Shown piece after piece: positions 13,431-53,631 of a stretch of DNA of 64,000 bases (position 1 is its first letter; each line of letters opens with the position of its first letter). Source of the stretch: Dicyema japonicum (lineage: Eukaryota > Animalia > Dicyemida); assembly GCA_011109175.1 (NCBI GenBank), contig RDEW01000017.1, positions 833,443 through 897,442 of the forward strand. The letters run 5' to 3'. A program made the translations under genes and the position numbers. A model generated the notes under the pieces. That model had not been told where the DNA came from. It ran no database searches and saw only the letters and a list, made by a program, of their open reading frames with translations.

Positions 13431-14408
13431 TCATATAATAGGCTTAATACAGGATACAGGCACTAATCCAGTACAGGTACCCCGTCTCACTTTTATCATA
13501 CCATTAACTTCCACTAATGACTCTGCCCTTAATACTTCATCCGCTTGAAGACTCAACTCATTCATGTTTTTTGCCTCATATTCAAATATTACTTGCACCC
13601 ACGTGGATTCATTTTTTGATGTTTTCTTTCCACCACTAACAGTCAGCACAATCACAACCTCATCAATCCAGGAACCAACGCTCCCAGCAGTTTGGCAGCC
13701 TCTGTGTGGTATTTAAACTGGGCCTGAATCAACTGTAAAAAAGTATCCTCCATACATTCCTGCATTTATTATAACGACAACCCCCTTAGCGGCGAACTCA
13801 CTCATTTTATAAACGGTCTCCTCCATGGCGGTCTCGAAGGCCACTTTGAGGTCCTTTAGTTCAGTGGAAGACTAGGATCACAGAAAGGATCACTGTGTTG
13901 GCGTTTCTGGCCGCGTCGTAGGAAAGACGAAGGTACTCTAGCTCCTTCTGGCATTCTAATGGTCACTGACTTTCTTAACCTCGATCTCTTCGAAATTCTT
14001 GATAAACTTTTCTAGTGAGGCGTAAAATTCTCCGTGGATTTTCTGCACCATTTTCTGCTCAATTTCTGCCAATCCCAATTCCGTGGCACCGATTTCACTG
14101 CAAACTGAAGAAATCGAGGTAAAAACACGTGATGTCTGCACAAAACTGGCACCCAAAGACCTGGGATTTATCCTCTTCTCGGTCTGAAGATTGGGGAGAC
14201 TTAAAGGTCGTAAATCACCCATAATTGAGCGAACAGCCTTCTTTATGTTCTGACATTTGTTGAATAGGTCTTCGAATTGAGCGTCGTATTGAGTCCTTTC
14301 GGCAGTCCCCAGTATTTCCCCAGTCTTTTGACGAACCTGACTTAGAGGAACTGATGTGCTTTTAACCTTCTTCTTAGCTACATCCATAAAACTCTTAAAT
14401 TTGTCCAT
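13431..14408 (-). CDS. SH3GLB: Endophilin-B-like N-BAR + SH3 protein
   Basis: QKTGEILGTAERTQYDAQFEDL (BAR N-terminus); SH3 QVIFEYEAKNMNELSLQADE...GLVPVSCI; GT-AG introns 13948-13970 (23 nt), 13872-13893 (22), 13760-13781 (22) and 13636-13658 (23) restore one frame; further in-frame introns in exon 1 not excluded. Confidence 0.8.
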
Positions 14409-20360: not shown

Positions 20361-22130
20361 TGTTATCTTAACCCCACTTTATTTAACCAACAATAAAGTT
20401 AAATTTAGTAATCACAACCTTCCTCGCCATCCTGTTCGCCAGCCTCTCAGGCAGGTTCGATTCTGGTTTCTGAAACAATTCCGAGAGCGCCTTGTCCAAT
20501 TGAACCTTTTGTTCATATGGATCTCCGGGCTTTGCCTTCTATACTCCAGTGTCAGGCTCTCTAAGGTCCGTTTTAATACAGTAAACTGTAGATAGGCCTG
20601 GAGCTTCCTATCTACCCCTAACTGTTTCAGATAACCCTTGTGGTACTTTGTTGCAATTCCTTCCCACGTCATTACTATTAGAACAACGAGGAGCTTGCAA
20701 CCAAGCATCTGCCCCATCTCGTTTGCAAGCAAGTCATACTTTTTTTTCTCCATCTCCACAGTCTGCAAACGGTCTTGAGACGTAATGCCTAACCTCTATG
20801 ATAAGGACTTGGCCAGACTCCTTCTTGTACCACAATGTCCGGTTTATTGTGCTAGACTATCACCGAGGTACGGATAACACTGTCTACCTTTATCTGAACC
20901 CTGGTGTTCTCTACTACAGATTGCACCTTATGAGTCCGCAACTTTCTGGTGTGGCGAATACCATACTTATTGCATAGTAAAAGATGAAGATTCCTTACTA
21001 CCTCGTTGTGTTTTCACATATAGTCGTGGCAGAGCATGGATCCGTACCGAGTGCCTAAATGATCAACCGACATGCTCCTTGACTTACAATGGGGACATTT
21101 ATTTGTTGATCGACCCCAAAAAATATTGCGGTCTTGCATATACGTGTACAGTACCTCCGATCGAGGTGAGTTGTCACCGTATTTTAGCCATATTGTCGAC
21201 GACTCAAGGTCGACATGTGGGTTGTCCAATGCTCTGAAGAGGACCTTATGAAGGCTTTTTAAGTTGATCTTTTCCATCAAATTATTATATTGTAATTCGA
21301 TCAACGCCTTCACATTTACTAGCCCACCATCATCAACACCATACTTAGCAGACAAAAAAGGTCTGATAGTGCCTAGGTGGGTTGCCCGTGTTTTCTCGGT
21401 CGTTATTATGGCGTGCTTCCTAGCAGACACACTTGACCCAGCTATCAGGGTGTCGTGCATTCGCATTAGGATACGCTCACTTAGTTGGACTACTCCACAC
21501 AGTCCACGGCCGAATTTATCACGGGGTAAATATAGTCTCTCCTTATTGGCTGCCAGCACATGGACATGGTTCTCTCTGAGTACTCCACGGATCATAACAT
21601 CCATCTCATCATACTCTTTGGGCTCAAACTCCACAACACCTATGTAGTAGTTTAGCAGCGAGACAGCATACTCATTTAATGCTAGGAACAAATTCCTTGC
21701 ATTTAGAGACGTCTTACATAATAACGCTGCTCTTTTACAAATGCCTTCAGTAATTTGTCGCTTTGTCTCAGGCATTATAAGGGACTTTGGAGTTCGGTAA
21801 CACCCAGATACTTAAATTTTTCGTGTTCTTCTAAGAACCTTACTAACTCGCTACATACCTGCGTGTTAGTCGCAGACTTGGAATAATTCAAATCTAGTTC
21901 GATACTCTCAAAGAATTCCCTGGCACAGACCCCCATGGAGTAGAGCTCTTCAGCTGTTCGAGCATACATCTTCAGGTCATCGATAAAAAGAAGGTGATTT
22001 GTACTGAAACAACCCCCTCATAATGAACTGGTATTTGCTCAAACCAGTCATTGAGGCGGCGACTCAATGACTTTTAACAGAGAACAAAGAGCAGCGGAGA
22101 CATGCTATCCCTCTGAAGGATACCCCTCTT
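20361..22130 (-). mobile_element. R4/Dong-like REL non-LTR retrotransposon, 5'-truncated and decayed
   Basis: FKYLGV; ERLYLPRDKFGRGL; CPHC..SVDHL; KPDIV; EKKKYDLLANEM..LIVMTWEG. Confidence 0.85.
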
Positions 22131-22179
22131 GTGTTTTACCTCGCTTATCCGGTGCCTATTATTTAATTTAATTCATTAA

Positions 22180-24030
22180 CCCCGAATTTATTATTTATTT
22201 ATTTAATAACCCCAAAAAAAACACCAAGAAAGAAGGAGTAAACCAACTAATTAAGTGATCCCGGCACGCCTCAACAGGATCGAGAGGTTTTTCCTATGTT
22301 CTTCCAGAGTACCCACGGCTTTCCTGAATAGACGACGATCATCTTTCATTAGAGTTTGAAGAGGGGTGCGTTTTTTCCCCAAATTTCGTGTATTTGAGGT
22401 TTCTAGCCTTGAATGGATGAAACGACTTGTTTCCGATGAAGCCGGAGCCGTTATTTTCGATTGCGGCGTGGTTAAGCATTGGGGGAAAAAATCGCGGGTA
22501 AATTTGTTAGACGTGCAAGTTTGCCTGTTAGGGAGTTGATCTTGTATGAATTGGATATTGAAGCTCCATAGGCCCATGAGACACAAGCATACTCTACCGT
22601 CGGTTTTAGAAGTTGATTGAACAAGACGACAGCACATTCCTTGACGGCCAGGACTTTAAAAACGGTTTGATTATATTTAGTTTCCTGAGACCCTTTGTCA
22701 TAACGTTCTTCATATTTTGAGAAAATGTCATCAAAGGGTCAAATGTCACTCCCAGGATAGTTGGACGAATCTGTAATGGTAAGGAGTCTCTATAAATGTT
22801 TAAATCCAGTGTATGTTTTTCTTTTCTGTCCATGGTGAAGATTGTATGCGTTGATATATCCCTGGATATGAGAGACGATTCAACTTCAACCAGGCTCCTA
22901 GGTCATCAATATGTGACTGAAGCTCTGATTTTGCTGTACCCACGTATTTATTCCTGCTAGCGATGATTAGGTCGTCAGCATAAGTGAGAAGCATTGAATC
23001 TGGTCCTACAGGGCAGGGTAAATCGTTGAGGAATAAGTTGAATAACGCCCGAGAAAGGGGCGATCCTTGAGGGACACCATTTGGTAGTAGACGGGCCTAT
23101 ACAGACACGTCCTCTTCTTCCGGAGAGAAAATTGGCTATCCATCTTTTTAAAACCGGCTGAATGGTGGTGTCAAAATTTTTTTCGTGAGTATGTTCTCGG
23201 GACAGAATCGAACGCTTTCTGGATGTCCAGGGAGACCACGATTGTCCGTAGGTTCGTTGAACCCTTCTGATATAAATTGAGACAGTGAAGTCAAATGTGT
23301 CGTAGTTGAACGCTCACATTTGAAACCATGTTGAAAGTGGCAGTCAAGCAAATGGGATTTAATTTTCCAGAGTACGAGTTTCCCCATTAGGCGCGATAAT
23401 GCGCACGTTAATGAATTTGGACGGTAGAAAGAAGGTATGGTCTTCGGTTTTCCTAGTTCTTAGGATGGGTATTATAAGTGAATTCTTCCATTTTTATGGG
23501 ATGACGTTCTTGTTAGAAGACAAATTAAAAATTGACGTAATCGAATTGATTGCAACATTACCAAGATGTTTTAGCAAAATTCCCGGAATGCCGTCAGAAC
23601 CACACGTATAAAATCTCTTCATCGATCTTATAGCCTGTGTAACCTCGGCCACGAAGTTGGTTTAGGCATTAAATTCCGAAGGTGACAAGAATGGGATTTC
23701 GAAAAGTCCTTGTGACTTATGGATGCGTAATGTTTCATTAGGTTGTTAGCTTGCACAGTATTTGGAGCAGAAAAAGATTCTGATTCATCTGATTCGACGA
23801 ATAGTTTTCCATAAAAGACTCGTGAATTTCATATGTCCAATATATGATAATAGGCGGTTCCACGCCCTATCTTTCTTTTATCTGATGAGCTTTGTAATTC
23901 TCTGATTTAAGTTCTTCATTCTCGAGGAAATGTTAACCTAGTGTGTACCCCCAGAACGTATGGCTTCAGTTTTGTCGTGGTCATTATTCGTAGATTCATG
24001 ATGGAGAGGCCAAGAGCGAAAGGATCAAAG
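22180..24030 (-). mobile_element. APE-RT LINE, decayed copy with 3' tail
   Basis: FQHGFKCERSTTTHL; GVPQG; YADD; TILGVTFDPLMTF; tail GGGATCACTTAATTAG...GGGGTTATTAAATAAATAA. Confidence 0.85.
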
Positions 24031-24479
24031 CTCAGTAATCTATCCAATAACCTTCGCAGTTCGATGTGAGTGCATCGTCGATGAGTGAAGATAGACATGA
24101 AGCGGCAGAGATCCGAACTGCCTTCGGAATCCTCAGTGGTATTTTCCTTGACTTTCGCAAGCTGGATATGTTTAAGAGGACAGAATTGGAGTCAGAGATT
24201 GACTGCTCGAGAACTGGTCCGATTTGTTGGTAAGTTCTCTTAGGGGGTCCAGTCTCAGGTATCCGTAATGGTATAGGATAACTCAACATAAGAATCCCTC
24301 GTTTGTTCTGTGCCTCATCACCTACTAGCTATCCTTTTGTCCCATTCCAACCATTACGCCTTGATATCGAGGACGTCCAACAATAGACGGGAAGACATCG
24401 CGAGGAGCATCATCTTCAGCAAACCCTTCCTTGCAATCTACAACCAAAGCAGCAACATCTTCATCAACAATTTTGAATA

Positions 24480-25120
24480 ATTCCAACTGAAGACAACCAA
24501 TACAACGTGTAACGCCACATTAGGAGATAGTGAAGATATCATTCGGAGAAAAGCCATGGCAAACGCTGCATTACACAGGCTGAAAAACCTATGGCTAAAA
24601 CAAAAAGAGAATAACATAAAACAAAGGATAATGTTATACGAACACCTTGATCAAACCAATCCTTTCTATACAACTCTGGGACCTGAGGCACTTCAAAAAA
24701 GGAATTGGAGAGGCTAGACTCGTTTTACAGGAATCATCTAAGAAACATAACTGGAATTTCCTGGCCATCTACGTTCTCGCGGAAAGGACTGTACAATAAA
24801 TGTGACTGTACACTATTAAGTCTTGAGATCATTAGCTCTCGTTGGAGACTTTTTGGACACGTCCTGAGGTTGGACCCGAATCCCCCCGAATATCGCAATG
24901 GAAGATTACCTAACGCTTTCATGAAGACCGAGAACAACCCTCCCGGTCGTTTTACAAAACGATCTGAAAGCAGTGAAGAAAACATTGGCATCTAGTGACG
25001 ATCTGGACACACTGAGGACCTAGCTAAGAACAGAAGAGCTTGGAGCAAGCTAACTAATTCTCTATATTTTTTGCTGCACATGTGAGGGCTGTAAATACTA
25101 TGGCTCTCGTGAAAGTGATA
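24480..25120 (+). mobile_element. RTE family A, 3' part
   Basis: LDSFYRNHLRNITGISWP...RWRLFGHVLRL; tail GGGCTGTAAATACTATGGCTCTCGTGAAAG. Confidence 0.8.
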
Positions 25121-25570
25121 ATAGAATGGTGTTGATGTAAGATACTCCTATATCCTGAAAGTTTGTCTATTTTAAAGTTAATATTAATTTTTTTTCAGTC
25201 AATGCTTAGTGGACAGAAAAAATGATGGGATCGTAGTTCACAATCTATCGGATCTTGGTCATATTTAATCATTTTTTTATAGATATAAATAGATCTTCTC
25301 TAATCATTTTGGTTGATAATAGTAGATCTTAATAAGTATTTATTTCTGATCATTTTTAAAATTATCATTATCGTATTTTTGAAAAATAAGATTTCATTAC
25401 TTGGATATCAGTTAAAATGATAAATTAACTAAAATTATTGCGTAAAATGTAAATTAAAATACCCTCAGTACTAAAACTTGATTGATCGTCTCCTCAAGTC
25501 TTAAATCCGATATGAAATACATCTGTCATATAATTTTGACTATAAATATAAACCGATTAAAATATTATAA

Positions 25571-27208
25571 ATGCAAGCAATTTTGATATTTTTGTTTTCT
25601 CTGACATTCGAATGTATTTTTTACGTTTATTTGAGTCAAAAATACAAAGACTCTGATGGGCCGTTATGTTAAAAGAAGGGGTGCCATCTCCACAGTGCTC
25701 TGTCCACTAAACACAGTCGTAGCCAAGTGCACAAATGATGGAAAAGTCCACAGAGGAAGTCATGTTCAAGGCAATCTTTGTCAAGTTGTTGCTTATACAC
25801 ACAAACAAAAAACCCGGGTTTCTATTCAAAATTATTTAGGCTGTTGCAAATTGCATTCCAAACTACAAATACAGCGCAAAAGTGATTTCAGTGGTACTCA
25901 ACAAGGGAAAAGTCGCATGCCCATCAAATACTATACTTTCAGACTGTAGACTATTCAATTTGTAGCTTATATGCTTATTATTAAGGTTTCCTCCTAAATA
26001 CTCCCATAAGTCTAACATAAGGAAAAATTCTTGTTATCTGAAAGCAAAAAATAAGAAATACATGCGTACATACCCATCAATCGAAGTGACATGCATAGGT
26101 AACGAATTCATTCATATAAAACAGAGGAAATTGAAAAAATATTTGTTAGTCCTACCATCATTACAGAACGGAATTCGACTTCTGCTGAAACTTGTCCTAA
26201 AGGACATATTCTTAAATCATGTGAATGTCTGAATTTCACTGAATGCAGTTCTGTACAAGTATACAATAATATATGTCTCGTCAAATATTATGGTGATTCT
26301 ATGGCAGCTAGGGTAAACGTTCCTCTTTAAAATAGGCAAAAATTGGATGCGTTAAAACACAAGAACTAAAATCTGAGATAATTGACAGCAAATTGTCGAC
26401 TATTTCAAAAAATAAGAAATTTATCACAAATTGTCTGGTTAAACCCGGGTTTTGTTATAATCTATATTAGGCAAAATTCGCGGGAAAAATATCAGGAAAT
26501 TTTCAAAAATATGGATCAATATTGTAATCTAAAGAAACCCTGTTCTAACTGTGAAGTAAAAGCGATTATTATTGGTTTATAATTTTAGTGAGTTTAGTCC
26601 CGAAAAATAAAGTTTTTATTAATTTAAAACGATTAAAATGCCCACAAGGAACCACTCTGGTTGAATGTTACGGAATAAATGGGAGAGCTTACTCCAAAAA
26701 TAAAATCTGTTATAGTAGAGCAAAAAATAGAGTTACCAAAATTTCTAAATTCTTAGGTTTACGGAGTTTGTGGAGATTTTGGTAATTTGCCAATTCACTA
26801 CAACTTTATAAAACACACTTCTAAGCCTTGGACGAGTGGAAATTGTCCAAAAAACTCAAAATCGATTAGGATGCTTGTTAGCTAGGTTTTACGTTTTTTT
26901 ATGTGTAGTCCCAAGTCATTGTATATTGCTTTTGCATTCTATAAGAGAAAATGCAGGTTTAATGGTTATGTGATATTTTTGTTATTTGCCAAGTAAAAAC
27001 GATTACAGCTAGTAACGACAGCAAACCAATGTACACATTGATGGATTCCATTCCATACTTCAAAAAATTAGTGACTAACAACACATCCATGCTATCATTC
27101 GCAATTTACCCTAAAAAGAATCCGAAAATTCAATGCAGATGTATCGGAAGCAGACTTTTAAAGACAAAACTTATATGTTATGTCCCTAATCTCACTTTAT
27201 CTAACTAA
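25571..27208 (+). CDS. Putative secreted Cys-rich protein of about 465 aa: six ~60-aa modules plus a C-terminal extension; one +1 frameshift near 26849-26868
   Basis: Hydrophobic start MQAILIFLFSLTF; ten GT-AG introns: 25614-35, 25818-39, 25962-85, 26099-124, 26313-35, 26449-70, 26575-97, 26732-56, 26886-908, 26965-93; spliced length 1399 nt (466 codons + 1). Confidence 0.75.
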
Positions 27209-27774
27209 ACTAACATTCTCTTTAACTAATAACAATAATAATTCTGGTCGTGCTCATTCTTTGGAACTAATTACTAGAGAAATTTTTATAGCAATTAAAA
27301 TTTAAAATATAGCATTTAAATATCACTATAGTATTTATAAACCACATAATAGCATTTACACAATTTTAATTTTTGAAAAAATAAACGTTAAAAACAAGTA
27401 AAGATTTTTAATTAAGTTCAAAACTATTCCTCTAATTTTTGCTAGCTTACTCTCAGAGATGTCCCAAATCCCAGAATTGTAAGTTTGTACTGGAGAATGA
27501 AAGAGTTGTAAAATCTTAATCTCGTTTTTGTTCTGAAATATCTTTTTATGAAATAATGACCTTATTTTTTCAATGCAGCTGTTGCTAAACATTTTAGTGC
27601 TATTTCTATTTTTATACTTTTAGATTTCTTCGAGGGTTTTTAAATCCTCTACCTCGATGTGACTTTTTGTAGATTCTATATATTTTAAGAGTTTATGTTT
27701 TAATGTTCTTACTCTGTCCAAAGATTTAGAGTTTTCAATCCTTAAGCGTAGGTCTTTTTGTGTAATCCTGATAG

Positions 27775-28160
27775 ACTGCTATGGCCAGCACCCTCTCGTC
27801 TGCAAGAGGAGCGCTGTAAGATCTCCAAGGCACGAGGCTCTAAATGAGATTGTCAAACGGGCTATGGATGCTGCTGGATACTCGGCCATTCTTGAACCGG
27901 TCGGTTATGCAGAAGTGACGGGAAACAACCGGACGGGATTTGGGACGTGACATGTACAGACACGTTCGCCCCGAACAATTTTCACGAGTGCAACCTCTGC
28001 CTACAGGTATAGAGGACTATTTCATGTCGGATGGCATGAAATACTGCGGTCAATCGCGTGTAACTTTGCCATCTGTCTTTGACAACGATTTGAAGCCCAA
28101 TAAACGACAACTGAAAACGGATGTCCTGAGAAGCATCACTTAGAACAAATAGGAGCAGGA
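27775..28160 (+). mobile_element. CRE REL remnant joined to an RTE-A remnant
   Basis: 27775-27975 is highly similar to 57320-57560 with an internal deletion; then EDYF...GQSRVTLPSVFDNDL. Confidence 0.7.
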
Positions 28161-43416: not shown

Positions 43417-46400
43417 TCCTCTTTGGGCATTGACCCTCACTGTTCCCATCGAATGCCACTTGAGAAAGCAAATTACTAGACAAGACATCTGTTTCTCTTG
43501 GTTCCTCTTCGACGTTACTTCCGAGTTCAGAGCCTCTTGAGATAGGATGATTTGTCACTCTTGTAACCTCATCATCATAGTTATCAACTTTCAGGCCATG
43601 TCTATGCTATATTATCATGCTCTCTAAAGTTTTTTTGATCGTCGTTGATTAAATATACGCCCTTGTAGAGACATCCACGTTGAGTCTTTTCATATAGGAC
43701 TTGTAGTACTTTGTTACTACTCAATCCCATGTCAAAACAATCGGAATTATTGTCACATTGGCCTTGTGAATTTGTGCTAGTTCTTTTGCAAGAAGGTCGT
43801 ATTTGTAGAGTTTTTCCACTTCAACATGTTTTAGCAAATCTTGGGAAGTGATCCCTATTTCGTTTTTGGATTTATCGTGTACGAAAATATCAGGTTTGTT
43901 ATTTTTAACTTGTATATCCGTTTGTAGTGTTGTATCGACTCGTATTTCAACTTTACTGTTTGACATAATCGATTGGACTGTATGCGTCTTTACCCTCTTG
44001 GTTCTTTTTATTCCAAATTGCCGACATGGTTGCAGGTGTATACATCTTACAACTTCGTTATGTCGCCGCATATACCGGTAAGCATCCTAGTACATCGTGT
44101 AGCCAAGTGATCCACACTCTTTTTGGCCATACCAATTTGCTTTCATCTCTTCAAAGAACAGATTCCAATTTTGTATCATGCAGTACATTGCTTCCGACCT
44201 TGGACTAGTGTTTCCCCAGTAAGCCATTCTGTTGATCCATTGATATCGACATTCGTATTTTCAAAACACCTAAATATAATTGAATGAAGCAATTTCTGAT
44301 TATTCTTCTCCAGATAATTCTTCTTTTATGTTATTCCTTTATATTGTCAGTGTTCAAGTTAGAAATGTCATCCACATTGTATTTGGGTGCAATAAATCTT
44401 GCGATAGTGGTCATATGTGTTTTTCTTGTTTTAAGACTCGCAAGATTCCTGTCCTTCGAAGACACATGGAAGATTTCCTCTCAAGGTCAGGCAAAATTTG
44501 AAATAACATGCATTTACTCTTATCAGAAATTGAGGTTAATCCTTTTCCAAAACTATTCCTGCTAAGATATAATCTTTCTTTGTTGCAGGTTTTAAGTTAG
44601 ATAGTGTATGCCGGAGTTCTAAATCAATAGCTTCAATTCACGAGATTCAATGTCGATAAGTCCAATGTAATAATTATATAGCGAGAGTGCGTATTATTTT
44701 TCGCTTTAAACAAGTTTACAGCGTTTAATTTCGAATTCGCCTGCATCTCTATCCTTTTTTTCACATTTTCAGCAATTTTTTTTATAACTTTGTCTTTCAT
44801 AACCTTACTCCCTTTATCTTCTAACACTCCAAAATAGCGATATCCCTCACATGTTATGTTATGTTGTCCAATTAAGTCGTGTCCGACCCTTGGAGATCTC
44901 ATAAACGAGTTTTTTTAACTCTCCCCGATCCGTTGCAATTTGGAGTAGCCTTGATATAGGCATTCCCGTGACGTCTTCCACCGTGGATAGCAACCGAGTT
45001 TTTGGTCGGCCAGGTCTTCTCTTCCCAGTAATATGGCTCAGCATAATGATTCTTTCCAGTGAATCAGGGGACAACATGCCCAAAGAACACCAATTTGTGT
45101 TTTACGATTTTTCCCTCTAGCGAAATGTCAGTCTCTACCCGTTTGAGTACATCGATGTTTGTTATTTTGGAAGTCCAAGGGATTCTTAGTAACCTCCTCC
45201 AGCACCACAGCTCAAAAGCATTAATTCTTCGCCTATCCGCCTTTTTCAATGTCCTGATTCTGCGCCGTATAGAAAAACCGGGAACACATCCCTTACAACC
45301 ATCCAGATAATTTGTATCTTTGGCGCATTTCAGATTAGTTGCAGACTTTTCACATTTCTTTTAACGTCAACACACCCAGATATTAATCAATATCCTCCAT
45401 CATTTTTAGAATAGTATCTTCATATTCGGCAATTATTTTCAAGTCGTCAATAAAAAGAAAATGGTTAGTCGCACATGTCACAATAGACGGATCACTCTGA
45501 TCAATACATATCTTCGGGAATTTATATTTAATATTCGGATTAGTGGGTCCATTACCAGAGTAAACAACTGAGGAGAGAGTGAGTCTCTTTCAAGATTCCT
45601 CTTCCGAGTTTGATCTTTCCTATTCTTTTTTTGTTAAGGTTCAAAATAACATTCCACTTGCTTATTAAATTCTTGACAAACTTTACAATCCATTCTGGCA
45701 CTCCAGAGCAATCAAGAACACGACACAAAAATTCATGATTAACAGAATCGAAAGCCTTCTTCACATCAATCCATCTTGTGAATAAGCTATTTCCATGTTC
45801 AGCATTAACACACTGATTTATTAAAGCCTGCTCCTTTGCACCTTGGAACTGCCTTCTTGCTCCAAGCTGATTATCGAAGATAAGATTTAACCTTCAACAT
45901 TATCTGTACTATTTGTACTAACACATTTTGTGACAAGTTTGTACAATATAAGCATGCAGCTAATTGGTTGTAAGTCATTCAAAGAACAGCAGTCTTCTAT
46001 TTTCGGAATGAGGTACGTAATCCCTGTATAGAACCATTCTTCTAGGCAATATTCACCACTCACTATCTTGATAATCTCTCCACTCAGATAATTATAAAGA
46101 GAATTAAATTTCTTGACAAAAAATTCACATACTCCCTCACAGCCAGAGCTCTTCCAATTCGGCGTAAAGCGAATAATGTTCTTAACGAACTCAACTGTCA
46201 TATCTAACAGAAACTCCTCTGCTCATGTTATTCGCCTCCCAACAATATTTCTGTGAGAATAATTCTGATCCTTTTCCCATACATCTTTCCAAAATGACAC
46301 GCACTCATCTTCTGTAACTTTAAAATCACTATTATTGACGTCATCGTTGAGCTTCCGATAAAACCTCCTCTTGTTCAGCTCAAAACAAAATTTATTTCGT

Positions 46401-47100
46401 CTAAAGGATTTTCTTGATTCATGAATTGAGATTTTTTTCTCCATGATCTTGATTTTGTCTTCAATTAAGGTAGAGATCCTTTTCAGTTCTCCCTTTTTTG
46501 ATTTCTTGCATCCAAACGAGCATAAAACATCAAGCGTTTTCTCCCTTTCTTCCTTTGACTGCTTCCCAGTAAACCCATAAACTAAGGCGCAATTTTCTTT
46601 GAATTTTGAATTCTCTTCTCCACGTTTCCCTTCCAACAGCTTTTTACTGATTCCTTCTTTGTCAAATTTTCATATGCGCATTGTGCAGCATCAATTATGT
46701 CAGTTATCTCATTCATGTCCGTTGGCGGAAATGATGAGACATAATTTGATATCACTGCATTTAATTTAGTAAGAACATCCTTTTTGCTGGACGATGAGAC
46801 TCCATCCACCCCGAGGGATTCTCCCGAATCTCCTTTTTGCAGAGTCGACAACTATTGAGATCCACTTGATCCTGTCACCTGATCGAATCTCAGTGACTAA
46901 TGCTTTGAAGGACAGCAGATGAGCAGGAACATTTCCCACAGGAGATCGTATGCAAGTTCCATTGGCATCATGTAGTTTTGAAGACACACTTCTCACATCT
47001 AATTGGTTTCTATCTTCAATATTGTCTGTAAGACGGCCCTCAGGATTTGTTTGCAAACTGGTGAAAACAGACATACACACCACCACTAGAACAAATCCAA
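43417..47100 (-). mobile_element. R4/Dong-like REL retrotransposon, decayed and interrupted
   Basis: FELNKRRFYRKL; PNWKSSG; KAFDSVNH; YRYFGVLE; RHNEVVRCIH; KPDIFV; KYDLLAKEL. Confidence 0.85.
44842..45297 (-). mobile_element. RTE family B (BovB-like) 5'-truncated insertion with 10-bp TSD
   Basis: RRINAFELWCWRRLLRIPWT; GKRRPGRPKTR; (ACATA)n tail; TSD ATCCCTCACA/ATCCCTTACA. Confidence 0.85.
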
Positions 47101-50302: not shown

Positions 50303-52121
50303 CTATTCAACTCTGCTACCAGGTCCAACTCTTTTGACAAAAATAAATCCATGCTGAGTTCTCATCTTAGAGTTATTCCAAACAACCAGGGATTCATCTC
50401 CGATTTTCATATCAGCCTATTAAATATATATTAACATTACCAAAATGGTAGGTAGTACTTTCTTCTTTGCATTAAGCTGAGGAGGATTAGAAGGAAGATA
50501 TCCATCAAAATAAACAACTTCTCCCACATCAGATGCTTCGGGGACACATATAGGTTCAATACTAAATTATCAATATAAATTCAAACAATTCTGTTTGACA
50601 ACCAGGAAGTACTCCCTTACCACACATTATCATACCCTCTGACATAATTCCACGTAAATTGGCAGGTTTTAAGTTTACAAGGAATACAAACTTATTTCCC
50701 AATAAATCCTCCTCAGTACAATGACCAACAAGAGATGAACATATTGTTAGGGGTTTCTCCAATCCAACATCGACCTGTTCAACATAGAGAGAATTAGCGT
50801 TATCATGCTAAAAGTAATTATTAAAAAACCTTAGAAACAGAGAGGATCTTCCCAACTCTGAAATTACAAAGAGAAGGATCGGCCACTATTCCGTTATCAA
50901 TAAACTTTTTAGTCCTCTCAGTTGATGGATATGCTAGCTCTATTAGCTCGCTATTTGTTTTGAAAGACTCTTGAATAGGTTTTAAAAGAAGATTGATTTT
51001 CTTGGTTACAGCAATTTTTAAATCCTGAGGATGTAATTTCTACGAGTATTAAATAATTATAAACCCCTGACAAATAATCAGCCTCCACTTGTGCATAAGT
51101 AGAATAATCTACTTTCTCAGAATCTTTGTAATGTATTGAAAAATATTTTTCGTCGTTATTATCCATAACCGGAAAGATTACCATTTTAAGAAATGCCAAA
51201 ACTCCATTTTTTTCAAGAGAACATTGCTCACAAAAAGCCTTCTTTATTTTCTTTTCGACCAATCTAGGACTATCCAAAAAGTCTATTTTGGAATCTGGAT
51301 CTGACGAACTCATTTTGGTACCTGACAAACCAGGTACTGAAATATTAAACAAAGTAAACCCATTGGATTCATTAAATGAGCCCGTTTCTTGTATCCCAGA
51401 ATAGGTAAGTACTACATTACTATAAATTAAACTTTTTCAGCAAAAGTAAATATCTTTCTCTGATCAACACCCCAAATTGGGCATCAACGTTCAAATATTC
51501 CTCATCCAATGCCTGTAAGCATGGATATAACAAATCCACTAAGTAAAGGATGTTCAACTTGTTTGACTACCTCAGAACCAGCTTTCTTAGCATCATGTTC
51601 TGTAACCAAAGTAGTCAGTTTATACACATCAAGAATATATTTACTGAAATTATATTAATAATACTCTGAAAGCTGGTATTCTGTCCCCTCAACAAATCTC
51701 AAAAGATTGATTGGGATATTAAGACTCTTCAAACATTCAGATATTATTAATTTGTAGTACTCCACTCTGTGATTTAACACAACCCAGTCAGTCTTCAAAT
51801 TATCCAAAGAAGCGTGAACGTCAGCCAACAAAATAGTCACCAACAAATCAATATTGATAATACCTCACAATTTGCCTTCAAAAACTGCCCTATTTTAACT
51901 AGAGGAATGAAATATCCAATATGAGGCTTCCCTGTTGTAGCAGTTCCCCAGTAAATTTTCAAACGACGAGTTTTTAGAGTTTCTTTAATCAAATCTTCCC
52001 CCAATACTTCCTAATGATATAAATAATATTGACTTGAAGATTTGATGTAATAAGAGAAAATGAATCAGAACAATTTGACTATAAATAAATTTTACTTAAC
52101 AAAAACCACGTTTCCACTCAT
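50303..52121 (-). CDS. YARS1: Cytoplasmic tyrosyl-tRNA synthetase with C-terminal EMAP-II-like domain
   Basis: [36 protein letters not shown]...LYVEQVDVG...[16 protein letters not shown]; tiny introns; one 1-nt deficit in a homopolymer at 51470-73. Confidence 0.95.
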
Positions 52122-52203
52122 TTATTTAAAAGTGTTTAATTAATTAATTTATTTATAAGTTGTTATTATTAAAAAATATTTGAATAAATAGAATATTTAT
52201 GTT
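52122..52203. promoter_or_regulatory. 82-bp AT-rich interval between divergent start codons (putative bidirectional promoter)
   Basis: YARS1 ATG at 52121 (minus), STARD3 ATG at 52204 (plus). Confidence 0.55.
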
Positions 52204-53631
52204 ATGGCAGAGTCTCAATACTTAATTTCCAATCCAAATCAAAATAATATATTTGTTACCTTAAGGAATGTCATGTCTTTCGTTTTCTTGGATACAATTC
52301 TTATTAGTCTCCTCTGGTTTATATTTGTAATGGTTTGACTTTTATAATAAATCAGACAAACCCTCAAGCTACCTCACTCAAGTCGGAAATTGTCCACTAT
52401 TCTTTCAAAACATCACTTTTTGATTTCGTGGTACGTATTATACTCATTTAGTGTCTTTCCGTAGTTCGTGGTTTCATTATTTGCGTTTGGTTTCTTAATT
52501 TTCGTCGTCATCGTTTGAAACTTTTAATTGTAATCTTTGAAAATAGTTTTAGATTTTAGCTATTGGTACTACTATTATGATTGTCCTTAAAGTATTAAAA
52601 TATTATATGGTATTTGCTTTATTTATTTCTTAGTTTGCTCATTACTCTGACAAACAGTTGAAGGGACTCAGCTTTGTTATTCCCATCTTGCTGCTTAGCT
52701 TCTCGCTTTCCTGGCTACATTTGTGGAAACTATCAAATTCTAATATTAATGTTGAAACCATTGACTATGAGAGTATTGGAAACAATAAGAAAGTGTTGGA
52801 TTGGATGGATTTTAATGATAACGAGTCCTTCTATACAGTACAGGCGGAGATGTACGGAGGTTAGTCTGTTAAATGTATCAGAGATGGTTTTGTACAAAAA
52901 ACATGGGAGAATGAGAGGAAAATAATGTGGGAAGTTGTTGTTCCTCTCTATGAGTCTGATTTGAATTGGAAAATATATTCTGAAGACCATCAAGTCACTG
53001 TTTTATATAATGACCATAAAGATTTGGGTTACATCGTATGCGGAAAAGTTTAATTGTTACACATTATGATAGATACATATATATGCATCATTTGATTCTA
53101 TTGCTAAGGAATTGATTGATAATGCTGAGGCTAATACTCAATGGGATTCTAATACTGAGAAAATAACCGTACTAGTTTATTTAAAGTTGACAGAGAAACA
53201 TAATATCTGAGGATTCTGATATTATTATAGCTGTTAGTAAGGATGCTGCTGGGGGTCTTGTAAAATCAAGGTTATATAGTATATTTTCATCATAGAGTTT
53301 TTTCTACCTTCCGTTCTTGGAAATATAAAAAAATTGAAAATATCTCTACGTGTACATTATGCAGTGTGTCAATAAATCATGAACAGGCGCAAAATTCAGC
53401 AGTGTAAAATGTTACTTTATACTAAAGGGGACGGATTAACTACGGGACAGGTTTCTACTTGATATCCTCAAATGAAATGTGTGAGATATCTATTTATTTT
53501 AACATTGACATAAATGTAGTAATATTTGACTCATTTAGTTGTCTATCCCTAAATTCATCAAAAACAAAAAACTTTCCAAGGTAGCCCACGATTATGTCCT
53601 TGCACTCAAACATTACATGGAAAATAAATAA
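52204..53631 (+). CDS. STARD3: STARD3/MLN64-like MENTAL + START sterol-transfer protein
   Basis: FLDTILISLLW...HYSFKTSLFDFV (MENTAL); DAAGGLVKSR and RGRINYGTGF (START); several tiny introns, some boundaries approximate. Confidence 0.8.

Follow-up and report, generated by a model that had tools for sequence, protein, structure and literature searches.

The locus at 25571–27189 on the plus strand of the window (the whole 64-kb stretch of Dicyema japonicum DNA analysed here) is probably a single-copy protein-coding gene with ultra-short introns, its product composed of a signal peptide and three three-exon cassettes carrying six resistin/PCSK9-like modules, and the breaks in its frame are best read as assembly errors or variants of a single base in homopolymers, not as decay. 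That it is a real gene is very probable. It is absent from the protein collections searched, in which exon 5 had no close homologue; a word-indexed homologue search gave no candidates. The features of the gene are listed in Table 1.

Table 1. Features of the gene from 5' to 3' (window coordinates; a slash within a motif marks the splice junction).
Feature	Position	Strand	Remarks
Promoter-like box TATAAATA	25541..25548	+	30 nt upstream of the ATG; putative, read from the sequence
Exon 1	25571..25613	+	Start codon; hydrophobic N-terminus (residues 2-13), probable signal peptide; ends in phase 1
Intron 1	25614..25635	+	22 nt, phase 1, GT..AG
Exon 2	25636..25817	+	Possible dibasic KRR site, then module 1 (C-P-x7-C-x16-C) to phase-0 junction
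Intron 2	25818..25839	+	22 nt, phase 0 (R/AVANC)
Exon 3	25840..25961	+	Module 1, last Cys; module 2, first half (C-P-x7-C)
Intron 3	25962..25985	+	Phase 2; 24 nt in window, 25 nt in reads; in-frame TAG inside
Exon 4	25986..26098	+	Second half of module 2 (C-x19-C); closes cassette 1
Intron 4	26099..26124	+	26 nt, phase 1, cassette boundary
Exon 5	26125..26312	+	Module 3, best preserved (C-x8-C-x-C-x5-C-x9-C; sixth Cys in exon 6)
Intron 5	26313..26335	+	23 nt, phase 0 (R/AKIGC)
Exon 6	26336..26448	+	Module 3, last Cys; module 4, first half, without its first Cys
Intron 6	26449..26470	+	Phase 2; 22 nt in window, 23 nt in reads
Exon 7	26471..26574	+	Second half of module 4 (C-x5-C-x2-C); closes cassette 2
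Intron 7	26575..26597	+	23 nt, phase 1, cassette boundary
Exon 8	26598..26731	+	Module 5 (C-P-x7-C-x13-C) to phase-0 junction
Intron 8	26732..26756	+	25 nt, phase 0 (R/VYGVC)
Exon 9	26757..26885	+	Module 5, last Cys; module 6, first half; holds the frame break in the A-run 26849-26854
Intron 9	26886..26908	+	23 nt, phase 2
Probable last exon	26909..27189	+	Second half of module 6 (C-x11-C, read frame) and tail of ~65 residues with three more Cys
Supposed intron 10	26965..26993	+	29 nt in window, 30 nt in reads; doubtful, probably coding
Stop	27187-27189 (read frame); 27206-27208 (window frame)	+	

Rebuilding the model from the ATG at 25571 to the stop in the window frame, with ten GT..AG introns, reproduced exactly the intron lengths, the phases and the placement of the phase-0 and phase-2 introns given in the initial annotation. 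In the ten-intron version all introns are GT..AG and 22–29 nt long (22–26 nt for introns 1–9), and the phases run 1,0,2,1,0,2,1,0,2,1 once one base is dropped from the A-run at 26849–26854. Within 25571–26848 the best ATG-to-stop path with GT..AG introns of 20–30 nt has 1091 coding nt, whereas the same path search in dinucleotide shuffles (n = 100) gave a mean of 296 nt and a maximum of 551 nt; the open frame is therefore not due to chance. Read-through is impossible for every one of introns 1–9 (for intron 1 because its length is not a multiple of three), and the exons, at 34.6% GC, are richer in G and C than the introns (23.8%) and the flanks (about 25%).

The frame of the window was compared with contigs from four public DNA runs of one sample. 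The base at 26849, called surplus beforehand from the frame, is missing in the contigs of all four runs. The reads also carry four bases that the window lacks, namely an A behind 25982 (intron 3), a T behind 26449 (intron 6), an A behind 26972 (supposed intron 10) and a G behind 27145 (last exon), the last of which moves the stop to 27187–27189. At three frame breaks the pieces were translated separately and joined with X only. Codon log-odds for 26993–27145 are +9.0 in the read frame vs −21.8 and −23.9 in the other two, and for the last 13–20 codons, which are unlike between window and reads, codon scores do not choose. Read depth in the four runs is flat and single-copy across the gene, with no joints.

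The more likely structure has nine introns with phases (1,0,2)x3, that is, one signal-peptide exon followed by three three-exon cassettes. With the extra A of the reads, the stretch 26965–26993 is 30 nt long, in frame and free of stops, and thus probably not an intron; translated in the read frame it gives module 6 its missing last Cys, 11 residues past the previous one, as in module 5. The tenth member of the strict periodicity first described is thus probably an artefact of a one-base assembly gap, and the periodicity one of nine introns: the need for intron 10 arose only from the A missing from the window at 26972–26973, it lies four codons past a middle Cys whereas the other phase-1 introns follow the last Cys of a cassette, and it is longer than introns 1–9. 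If 26965–26993 were nevertheless a real phase-1 intron, module 6 would have a 50-residue loop before its last Cys. We regard this as rather unlikely, although the stretch has GT..AG ends, a length of 29–30 nt and a rather low GC content (27.6%), its removal at 30 nt would likewise preserve the frame, and the Cys total would be even (28) vs the odd 29 of the read-frame protein.

Could the locus instead be a decaying or silent gene copy, still mostly open but without expression or function? The sequences of modules 4 and 6 have become unrecognisable, module 4 has lost one Cys, the Cys count in the read frame is odd, each of the three exonic differences of the reads from the window alters the amino acid, and TE-derived repeats flank the gene closely. 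Yet every frame break of the window vanishes in the reads, about 470 codons remain open in a sequence of 33% GC, the remaining indels between reads and window are confined to introns 3 and 6, the doubtful intron 10 and the 3' part of the last exon, and the codon bias continues into the tail. A pseudogene is accordingly quite unlikely.

The repeat structure of this gene is written mainly in its introns. All three phase-0 introns fall directly after an Arg, five residues ahead of a Cys, and the phase-2 introns fall within the fourth or fifth codon past the second Cys of the even modules. A cassette thus comprises three exons and two Cys modules, with phase 1 at both borders and phases 0 and 2 within, such that it can be duplicated whole without breaking the frame. 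The cassette triplication originally proposed is upheld as a threefold, three-exon, two-module unit bounded by phase-1 introns, but sequence similarity between the units is weak: it is significant between units 1 and 2 and between units 1 and 3 (p about 0.006 each) and not between units 2 and 3, and the most alike pair of modules, M2–M5 (z 8.2), is at odds with a simple two-module period. The two-module period hence rests on intron positions and Cys landmarks, not on sequence similarity. Because M2–M5 is the best pair, duplication of a three-module block (M1~M4, M2~M5, M3~M6) was considered and rejected as the main history, the intron positions having a two-module period.

The modules share a C-x8-C-x13-20-C-x11-19-C core, retained in five of the six, with module 4 lacking the first Cys. 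Core spacings in modules 1, 2, 3, 5 and 6 are 8/16/16, 8/20/19, 8/17/16, 8/13/11 and 8/18/11, and linkers between modules span 21–27 residues. Compared with the motif published for PCSK9, C-(X)8-9-C-(X)18-25-C-(X)11-23-C (PMC9113161), the first and last spacings are in range; the middle one fits in modules 2 and 6 alone and falls below 18 in modules 1, 3 and 5. C-P-x7-C motifs occur at 25701, 25918, 26193 and 26639, with a fifth at the frameshift site; the 64-kb window holds no further in-frame copy of this motif and no second copy of the module. A weak tblastn match at 46343–46618 on the minus strand proved to be K/E-rich noise, not another module copy.

The kinship with resistin and the C-terminal part of PCSK9 suggested by the initial annotation is borne out by profile and fold evidence, though it is remote, and we therefore treat the modules as supported but distant relatives of the beta-sandwich module of these proteins. 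A phmmer search of 1.84 billion proteins with exon 5 found protein P0003 at E 3.3e-4, which has three PCSK9_C modules (PCSK9_C3 1.3e-17, PCSK9_C1 2e-16) and a weak Resistin match. An HMM built from 46 modules of the PCSK9_C1/C3-bearing P0003 family scored 27.0 bits on the spliced protein, a score reached by none of 1000 full shuffles (maximum 11.2) and none of 1000 shuffles with Cys fixed (maximum 17.9). Its domains cover residues 31–81 (exon 2 into exon 3), 168–223 (19.1 bits) and, weakly, 301–337 (exon 8), and its alignments cross the predicted phase-0 junctions of introns 2 and 5 with the last Cys correctly placed. In hhalign, modules 1, 3 and 5 matched the P0003 family with a probability of 89.7% (E 1.9e-6); sequence comparison does not pick out modules 4 and 6. 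Pfam gave no match at E up to 10 on nine single exons, all of them incomplete modules. A profile of the gene's own exons had only four matches among PDB sequences; two of these were resistin, at a non-significant E of 2–3. As leads only, the ESM Atlas placed exon 5 near a mollusc cluster with PCSK9_C domains (score 0.86), with Resistin at rank 86, and had nothing of use for exon 2 or the tail.

AlphaFold2 models of exon 5 were made from an alignment of the P0003 family (pLDDT 69.8) and from the gene's own paralogous exons only (pLDDT 56.5). For both, the PCSK9 C-terminal module M3 ranked first and second among 48,161 solved chains, with Z of 4.4–5.0 (VIA), low in absolute terms, for models of low to middling confidence of a fragment without its last strand. 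Resistin and RELM-beta ranked 13 and 20 with the family-alignment model and 5 and 8 with the paralogous-exon model. The structural check proposed at the outset, carried out on exon 5, was thus divided in its outcome, with the PCSK9 C-terminal domain leading the ranking but Foldseek against the PDB returning nothing significant.

It is very unlikely that the modules belong to another small disulfide family with a C-P-x-G-x-x-L-x-x-C loop (EGF/EB/CC-type or chitin-binding peritrophin-A) and resemble PCSK9 and resistin by coincidental Cys spacing. The exon 5 search did also find P0004, a protein of CC-domain repeats (E 5.8e-4), and P0002, which carries CBM_14 six-fold (E 4.1e-5), and the sole match of exon 5 in a phmmer search of PDB sequences was fibrillin (E 3.7). 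But the repeat HMMs of P0004 and P0002 scored only 1.5 and 4.7 bits, equalled by 8 and 16 of 500 Cys-fixed shuffles, whereas the PCSK9_C-like HMM scored 26.9 bits in the same comparison, equalled by none of 500. CC-domain and CBM_14 kinship was rejected on these controls; in addition, the fold searches select PCSK9 and resistin, not EGF or peritrophin, and the exon 5 models show five beta strands within about 55 residues. The last alternative, that there is no gene but a chance path through the abundant GT..AG pairs of AT-rich DNA, is effectively refuted, since, even though a naive search with introns of 18–40 nt yields an alternative nine-intron path of similar length, the shuffles fell far short of the observed frame, the Cys modules are periodic, profile similarity spans splice junctions and the frame-restoring read difference was foreseen.

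The predicted product has about 470 residues: six modules in tandem, preceded by a signal peptide and a possible KRR processing site and followed by a tail of ~65 residues. Its mature part has a computed mass of about 51 kDa, a pI of about 9.7 and a net charge of about +54. A signal-peptide-like N-terminus, as first proposed, is evident from mean hydropathy (Kyte–Doolittle, 11-residue windows), which reaches 2.0–2.65 over residues 1–15, the sole membrane-like stretch of the protein by this measure. We infer expression and function here, the latter from relatives only. The protein would enter the secretory pathway, and two nested disulfides may lock each module, with a third in module 3. Such a rigid, cationic string of modules could bind to anionic surfaces outside the cell (host epithelium, mucus or microbes, for instance) or serve there as a scaffold, and is presumably not an enzyme; the initial annotation proposed a candidate host-interface or matrix protein.

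The resistin/PCSK9-tail module is usually discussed as a feature of a vertebrate cytokine and a convertase, and RELM-beta is reported to kill microbes by binding anionic membranes. D. japonicum is a parasite of the octopus kidney. A far-reaching reading, which we consider unlikely, is that this module is an ancient, free-standing extracellular unit that a mesozoan parasite has cassette-triplicated into a six-module, highly cationic secreted protein, possibly at the parasite–host surface; if so, adhesion to the host renal epithelium and the killing of microbes through their anionic membranes would be two possible roles. Less speculatively, the gene adds to the known settings of the module a stand-alone protein with six copies, from a highly reduced parasite, and, together with uncharacterised three-module proteins from metagenomes, suggests that the module is older and more widely spread than its two well-known vertebrate uses. 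As the modules are related to resistin and the PCSK9 tail, the protein adds one more member to a module family already known and is not a new kind of protein, and no new kind of biology is opened. The phase-1-bounded cassette does provide a clean worked example of exon-cassette duplication, in a gene that is invisible to ORF callers in a genome with introns of 22–26 nt, and in which the logic of the frame alone located one-base assembly errors later confirmed by public reads.

In PCSK9, three modules are packed with pseudo-threefold symmetry behind a subtilisin-like catalytic domain, and each has six Cys in three disulfides, the N-terminal Cys being paired with a C-terminal CC doublet. The modules described here resemble those of the PCSK9 CHRD, M1–M3 (PF18459 PCSK9_C1, PF18463 PCSK9_C3; PDB 7anq, 4k8r), in being tandem, ~55–75 residues long and part of a protein that is probably secreted, in a core spacing of C-x8-C ... 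C ... C in or near the published ranges (PMC9113161), and in the top structural rank of M3 for exon 5, the link being made via the P0003 family. Unlike PCSK9, the protein has six modules instead of three, is not His-rich and has no subtilase or prodomain; consistent with the initial annotation, neither the gene model nor the single-exon Pfam searches contain a protease domain. Four of the modules (1, 2, 5 and 6) have only four Cys instead of six, for want of the N-terminal Cys and of the CC doublet, which occurs nowhere in the protein. Module 3 alone has six, and these follow the resistin/P0003 arrangement, not the PCSK9 pairing of N-terminal Cys and CC.

Resistin consists of one module, forms trimers by means of an N-terminal coiled-coil helix and has a signature of 10–11 Cys ending in CC (C-terminally C-X11-C-X8-C-X-C-X3-C-X10-C-X-C-X-C-X9-CC), including the stretch C-P-R-G-F-A-V-T-G-C-T-C. 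Module 3 resembles this stretch with C-P-x-G-x-x-(I/L)-x-x-C-x-C, and it is the only module with the resistin sub-pattern C-x8-C-x-C-x5-C-x9-C. With the resistin/RELM proteins (PF06954; PDB 1rgx, 1rfx, 1rh7) the protein would have in common a secreted, Cys-rich head that is probably a beta-sandwich, but it links six modules covalently, shows no evident helical stalk and lacks the full signature.

The one family to which sequence searches led, with 12–26% identity to exon 5, consists of uncharacterised, stand-alone three-module PCSK9_C-like proteins from metagenomes and metatranscriptomes (P0003, P0005–P0023), which likewise have tandem modules and no protease domain. Their six-Cys pattern, C-x8-C-x-C-x6-C-x9-C-x16-C, almost coincides with that of module 3, whereas modules 1, 2, 5 and 6 have lost the C-x-C...C pair, and the proteins of this family have three modules, not six. 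Some members of this family carry a somatomedin-B domain, and some are bacterial, e.g. a protein from a Candidatus Parabeggiatoa MAG.

The anatomy proposed in the initial annotation was reproduced exactly, from its start codon through ten GT..AG introns of 22–29 nt to its stop, with intron phases of 1,0,2,1,0,2,1,0,2,1 once a surplus base is removed from an A-run. The positional details hold as well: the phase-0 junctions (R|AVANC, R|AKIGC, R|VYGVC) fall at the equivalent place in each of the three two-module units, with a Cys always five residues further on; in the even modules, the phase-2 introns interrupt the 4th or 5th codon past the second Cys; and module 4 lacks its first Cys in the rebuilt model. 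Among animals, introns of 22–26 nt are found only in myxobolid myxozoans and Dicyema japonicum (PMC13644364).

The open frame exceeds chance. With dynamic programming over GT..AG introns of 20–30 nt, the longest ATG-to-stop path comprised 1091 coding nt, against a mean of 296 and a maximum of 551 in dinucleotide shuffles (n = 100), and the best path on the reverse strand had only 173. GC content is 34.6% in exons, 23.8% in introns 1–9 and ~25% in the flanks, and none of introns 1–9 can be read straight through. The motif C-P-x7-C occurs in frame four times in the gene and once at the frameshift site, and no further copy in a plausible context was found elsewhere in the 64-kb window. We consider it probable that the gene is real; it is absent from the protein collections searched.

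Four public runs contain the locus, all of them DNA from a single sample, and they cover the gene at a flat depth of ~20x with no joints. A control exon of a BAR-domain host gene (150 aa; Pfam BAR, E 3.7e-10), without relatives in a word-indexed protein search, returned the same four DNA runs and no RNA run; the missing RNA evidence is thus uninformative. The surplus base, predicted from frame logic alone, is missing at that exact site from all four runs. The reads also carry four extra bases relative to the window, and all five in-gene differences are of homopolymer length, as expected of an unpolished long-read consensus. Between 25094 and 27309, Illumina-based contigs from the four runs differ from the window by many one-base homopolymer indels and scattered transitions. 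The assembly seems to be unpolished here, and false frameshifts may meet frame-based readings elsewhere in this genome.

While the periodic ten-intron anatomy could be reproduced throughout, its 10th intron is probably not an intron. It is 30 nt long once the extra A is added, and in the reads its spliced and unspliced forms are equally in frame. When pieces of the window were translated separately, with X placed at every break, the segment proved open in the read frame, running directly into the proposed last exon and adding a Cys 11 residues past the previous Cys. This gives module 6 a Cys spacing of 8/18/11, resembling that of module 5 (8/13/11); the ten-intron alternative leaves a 50-residue loop in module 6. 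The other phase-1 introns come after a cassette's final Cys, a position to which that of the 10th is non-homologous. Given the open frame, the Cys supplied and this non-homologous position, we think that nine introns with phases (1,0,2)x3 are the better model: one signal exon followed by three three-exon cassettes, the last exon bearing a ~65-residue tail. This tail looks coding, with a GC content of 33.7% and codon log-odds of +9.0 in frame vs -21.8 and -23.9 out of frame. The extra G shifts the stop and alters the last residues; codon scores favour neither ending.

Coordinates of the gene, its read differences and neighbouring features
Feature	Position	Remark
Gene	25571-27208 (+)	ATG 25571; window stop 27206-27208
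Read-frame stop	27187-27189	
Longest path	25571-26848	
K-R-R	25650-25658	residues 27-29
Module 2	25888-26098	even
Exon 5	26125-26312	module 3
Module 5	26613-26780	odd
A-run	26849-26854	surplus base 26849
Extra A in reads	behind 25982	intron 3
Extra T in reads	behind 26449	intron 6
Extra A in reads	behind 26972	within proposed 10th intron
Extra G in reads	behind 27145	
Proposed 10th intron	26965-26993	
Homopolymer indels	25188, 25381, 25395, 25430, 25517, 25982, 26449, 26849, 26972, 27145	
Very high-copy repeats	25000-25093, 27256-27349, 27726-27800	
BAR-domain exon	13959-14408 (-)	
Further long path	23800-25077 (-)	962 coding nt
Further long path	52000-53277 (+)	909 coding nt

A kinship of the modules with resistin and the PCSK9 C-terminal domain, first suggested from their Cys spacing, was upheld at a remote level by profile, hhalign and fold searches. 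Single exons gave no Pfam match, and exon 5 gave nothing meaningful against PDB sequences. Exhaustive phmmer comparison of exon 5 with 1.84 billion representatives yielded four matches, three of them to other repeat proteins (FG-GAP, six-fold CBM_14 and CC-domain repeats). Kinship to the CC-like or CBM_14 repeats was rejected, their repeat HMMs scoring only 1.5 and 4.7 bits, inside the shuffle null. The fourth match (E 3.3e-4) was P0003, a JGI metagenome record of three modules that matches Pfam PCSK9_C3 (1.3e-17), PCSK9_C1 (2e-16) and, weakly, Resistin. Its relatives (P0005-P0023) are stand-alone three-module proteins, of which some are bacterial and some include a somatomedin-B domain. Scored with an HMM of 46 modules from these relatives, the spliced protein attained 27.0 bits, a value reached by 0 of 1000 full shuffles (maximum 11.2) and 0 of 1000 Cys-fixed shuffles (maximum 17.9). 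The two best HMM domains span the predicted phase-0 junctions of intron 2 and intron 5, with the last Cys in its correct place, and so lend these junctions independent support. In hhalign, modules 1, 3 and 5 matched the PCSK9_C-like family with a probability of 89.7% (E 1.9e-6). A profile built on three exons of the gene itself gave four PDB sequence matches, two of them resistin, at a non-significant E of 2–3. Membership of the gene product in a known module family, as a remote relative, is thus supported. P0003 (L001; JGI 3300008832, contig Ga0103951_10088175, 234-863) and its relatives constitute an uncharacterised stand-alone three-module PCSK9_C-like family in metagenomes, the bacterial ones coming from MAGs such as Candidatus Parabeggiatoa.

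For the fold, we modelled the 62 residues of exon 5 (module 3 minus its last strand). AlphaFold2 returned five strands with the family alignment (pLDDT 69.8) and the same five with only exons 2, 5 and 8 of the gene itself (pLDDT 56.5). Foldseek found nothing significant with the exon 5 model. In a Foldseek-independent search of 48,161 chains, module M3 (residues 606-668) of the PCSK9 C-terminal domain ranked 1–2 for both models, at Z 4.4–5.0, which is low in absolute terms. Resistin and RELM-beta ranked 13 and 20 with the family-alignment model and 5 and 8 with the own-exon model; one small family heads both searches. The core Cys spacing, C-x8-C-x13-20-C-x11-19-C, matches most of the PCSK9 module motif, in which the disulfides are nested (PMC9113161), but the N-terminal Cys and CC doublet of the PCSK9 modules are missing, so that two disulfides per module, and three in module 3, would be expected.

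Cassette triplication is our main reading of the gene's history. Intron phase and position, the basis of the two-module period, agree with it, but sequence similarity between the units is weak: Smith-Waterman comparison with shuffles gave p ~0.006 for both U1-U2 and U1-U3 (units being numbered by cassette) and no significant similarity for U2-U3. Among single modules, similarity is highest for M2-M5 (z 8.2), with M1-M2 and M1-M3 next at 5.2 each; M4 and M6 match none of the others. Triplication leaves M2-M5 unexplained, and these two modules differ in intron positions; they may have undergone gene conversion, or the history of duplication may have been more complex. If a three-module block had been duplicated, this would fit M2-M5 but not the intron pattern.

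The N-terminus is hydrophobic over residues 2–13, the sole membrane-like stretch of a protein with five N-x-S/T sequons, and the mature form has ~51 kDa and a pI of 9.7 (77 K+R vs 23 D+E). We suggest that the product may be secreted and non-enzymatic, with rigid, cationic beta-sandwich modules strung together to bind anionic partners outside the cell. The PCSK9 tail, which is pseudo-threefold, and the trimer of resistin (PMC9113161) suggest by analogy that the six modules could be packed as two three-module bundles. The dibasic K-R-R just ahead of module 1 could serve as a putative convertase-type processing site.

The gene lies in DNA of 33% GC between high-copy repeats, read depth climbing to thousands at the first and last of the repeats tabulated. 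Over the tabulated repeats, summed contig depth in run X3 reaches up to ~290,000, the baseline being ~420, and divergent loose ends are numerous. Repeats are abundant in the window (GC ~37%); the D. japonicum genome has 36.7% GC and 49% repeats (PMC6736024), and the 2019 date of the runs and a merged PacBio and Illumina assembly likewise fit this species. ORFs of at least 70 aa within 22000-25000 had no Pfam match. Two further paths from the tiny-intron search exceed the shuffle maximum of 551 coding nt, and may be more multi-exon genes or transposable-element ORFs.
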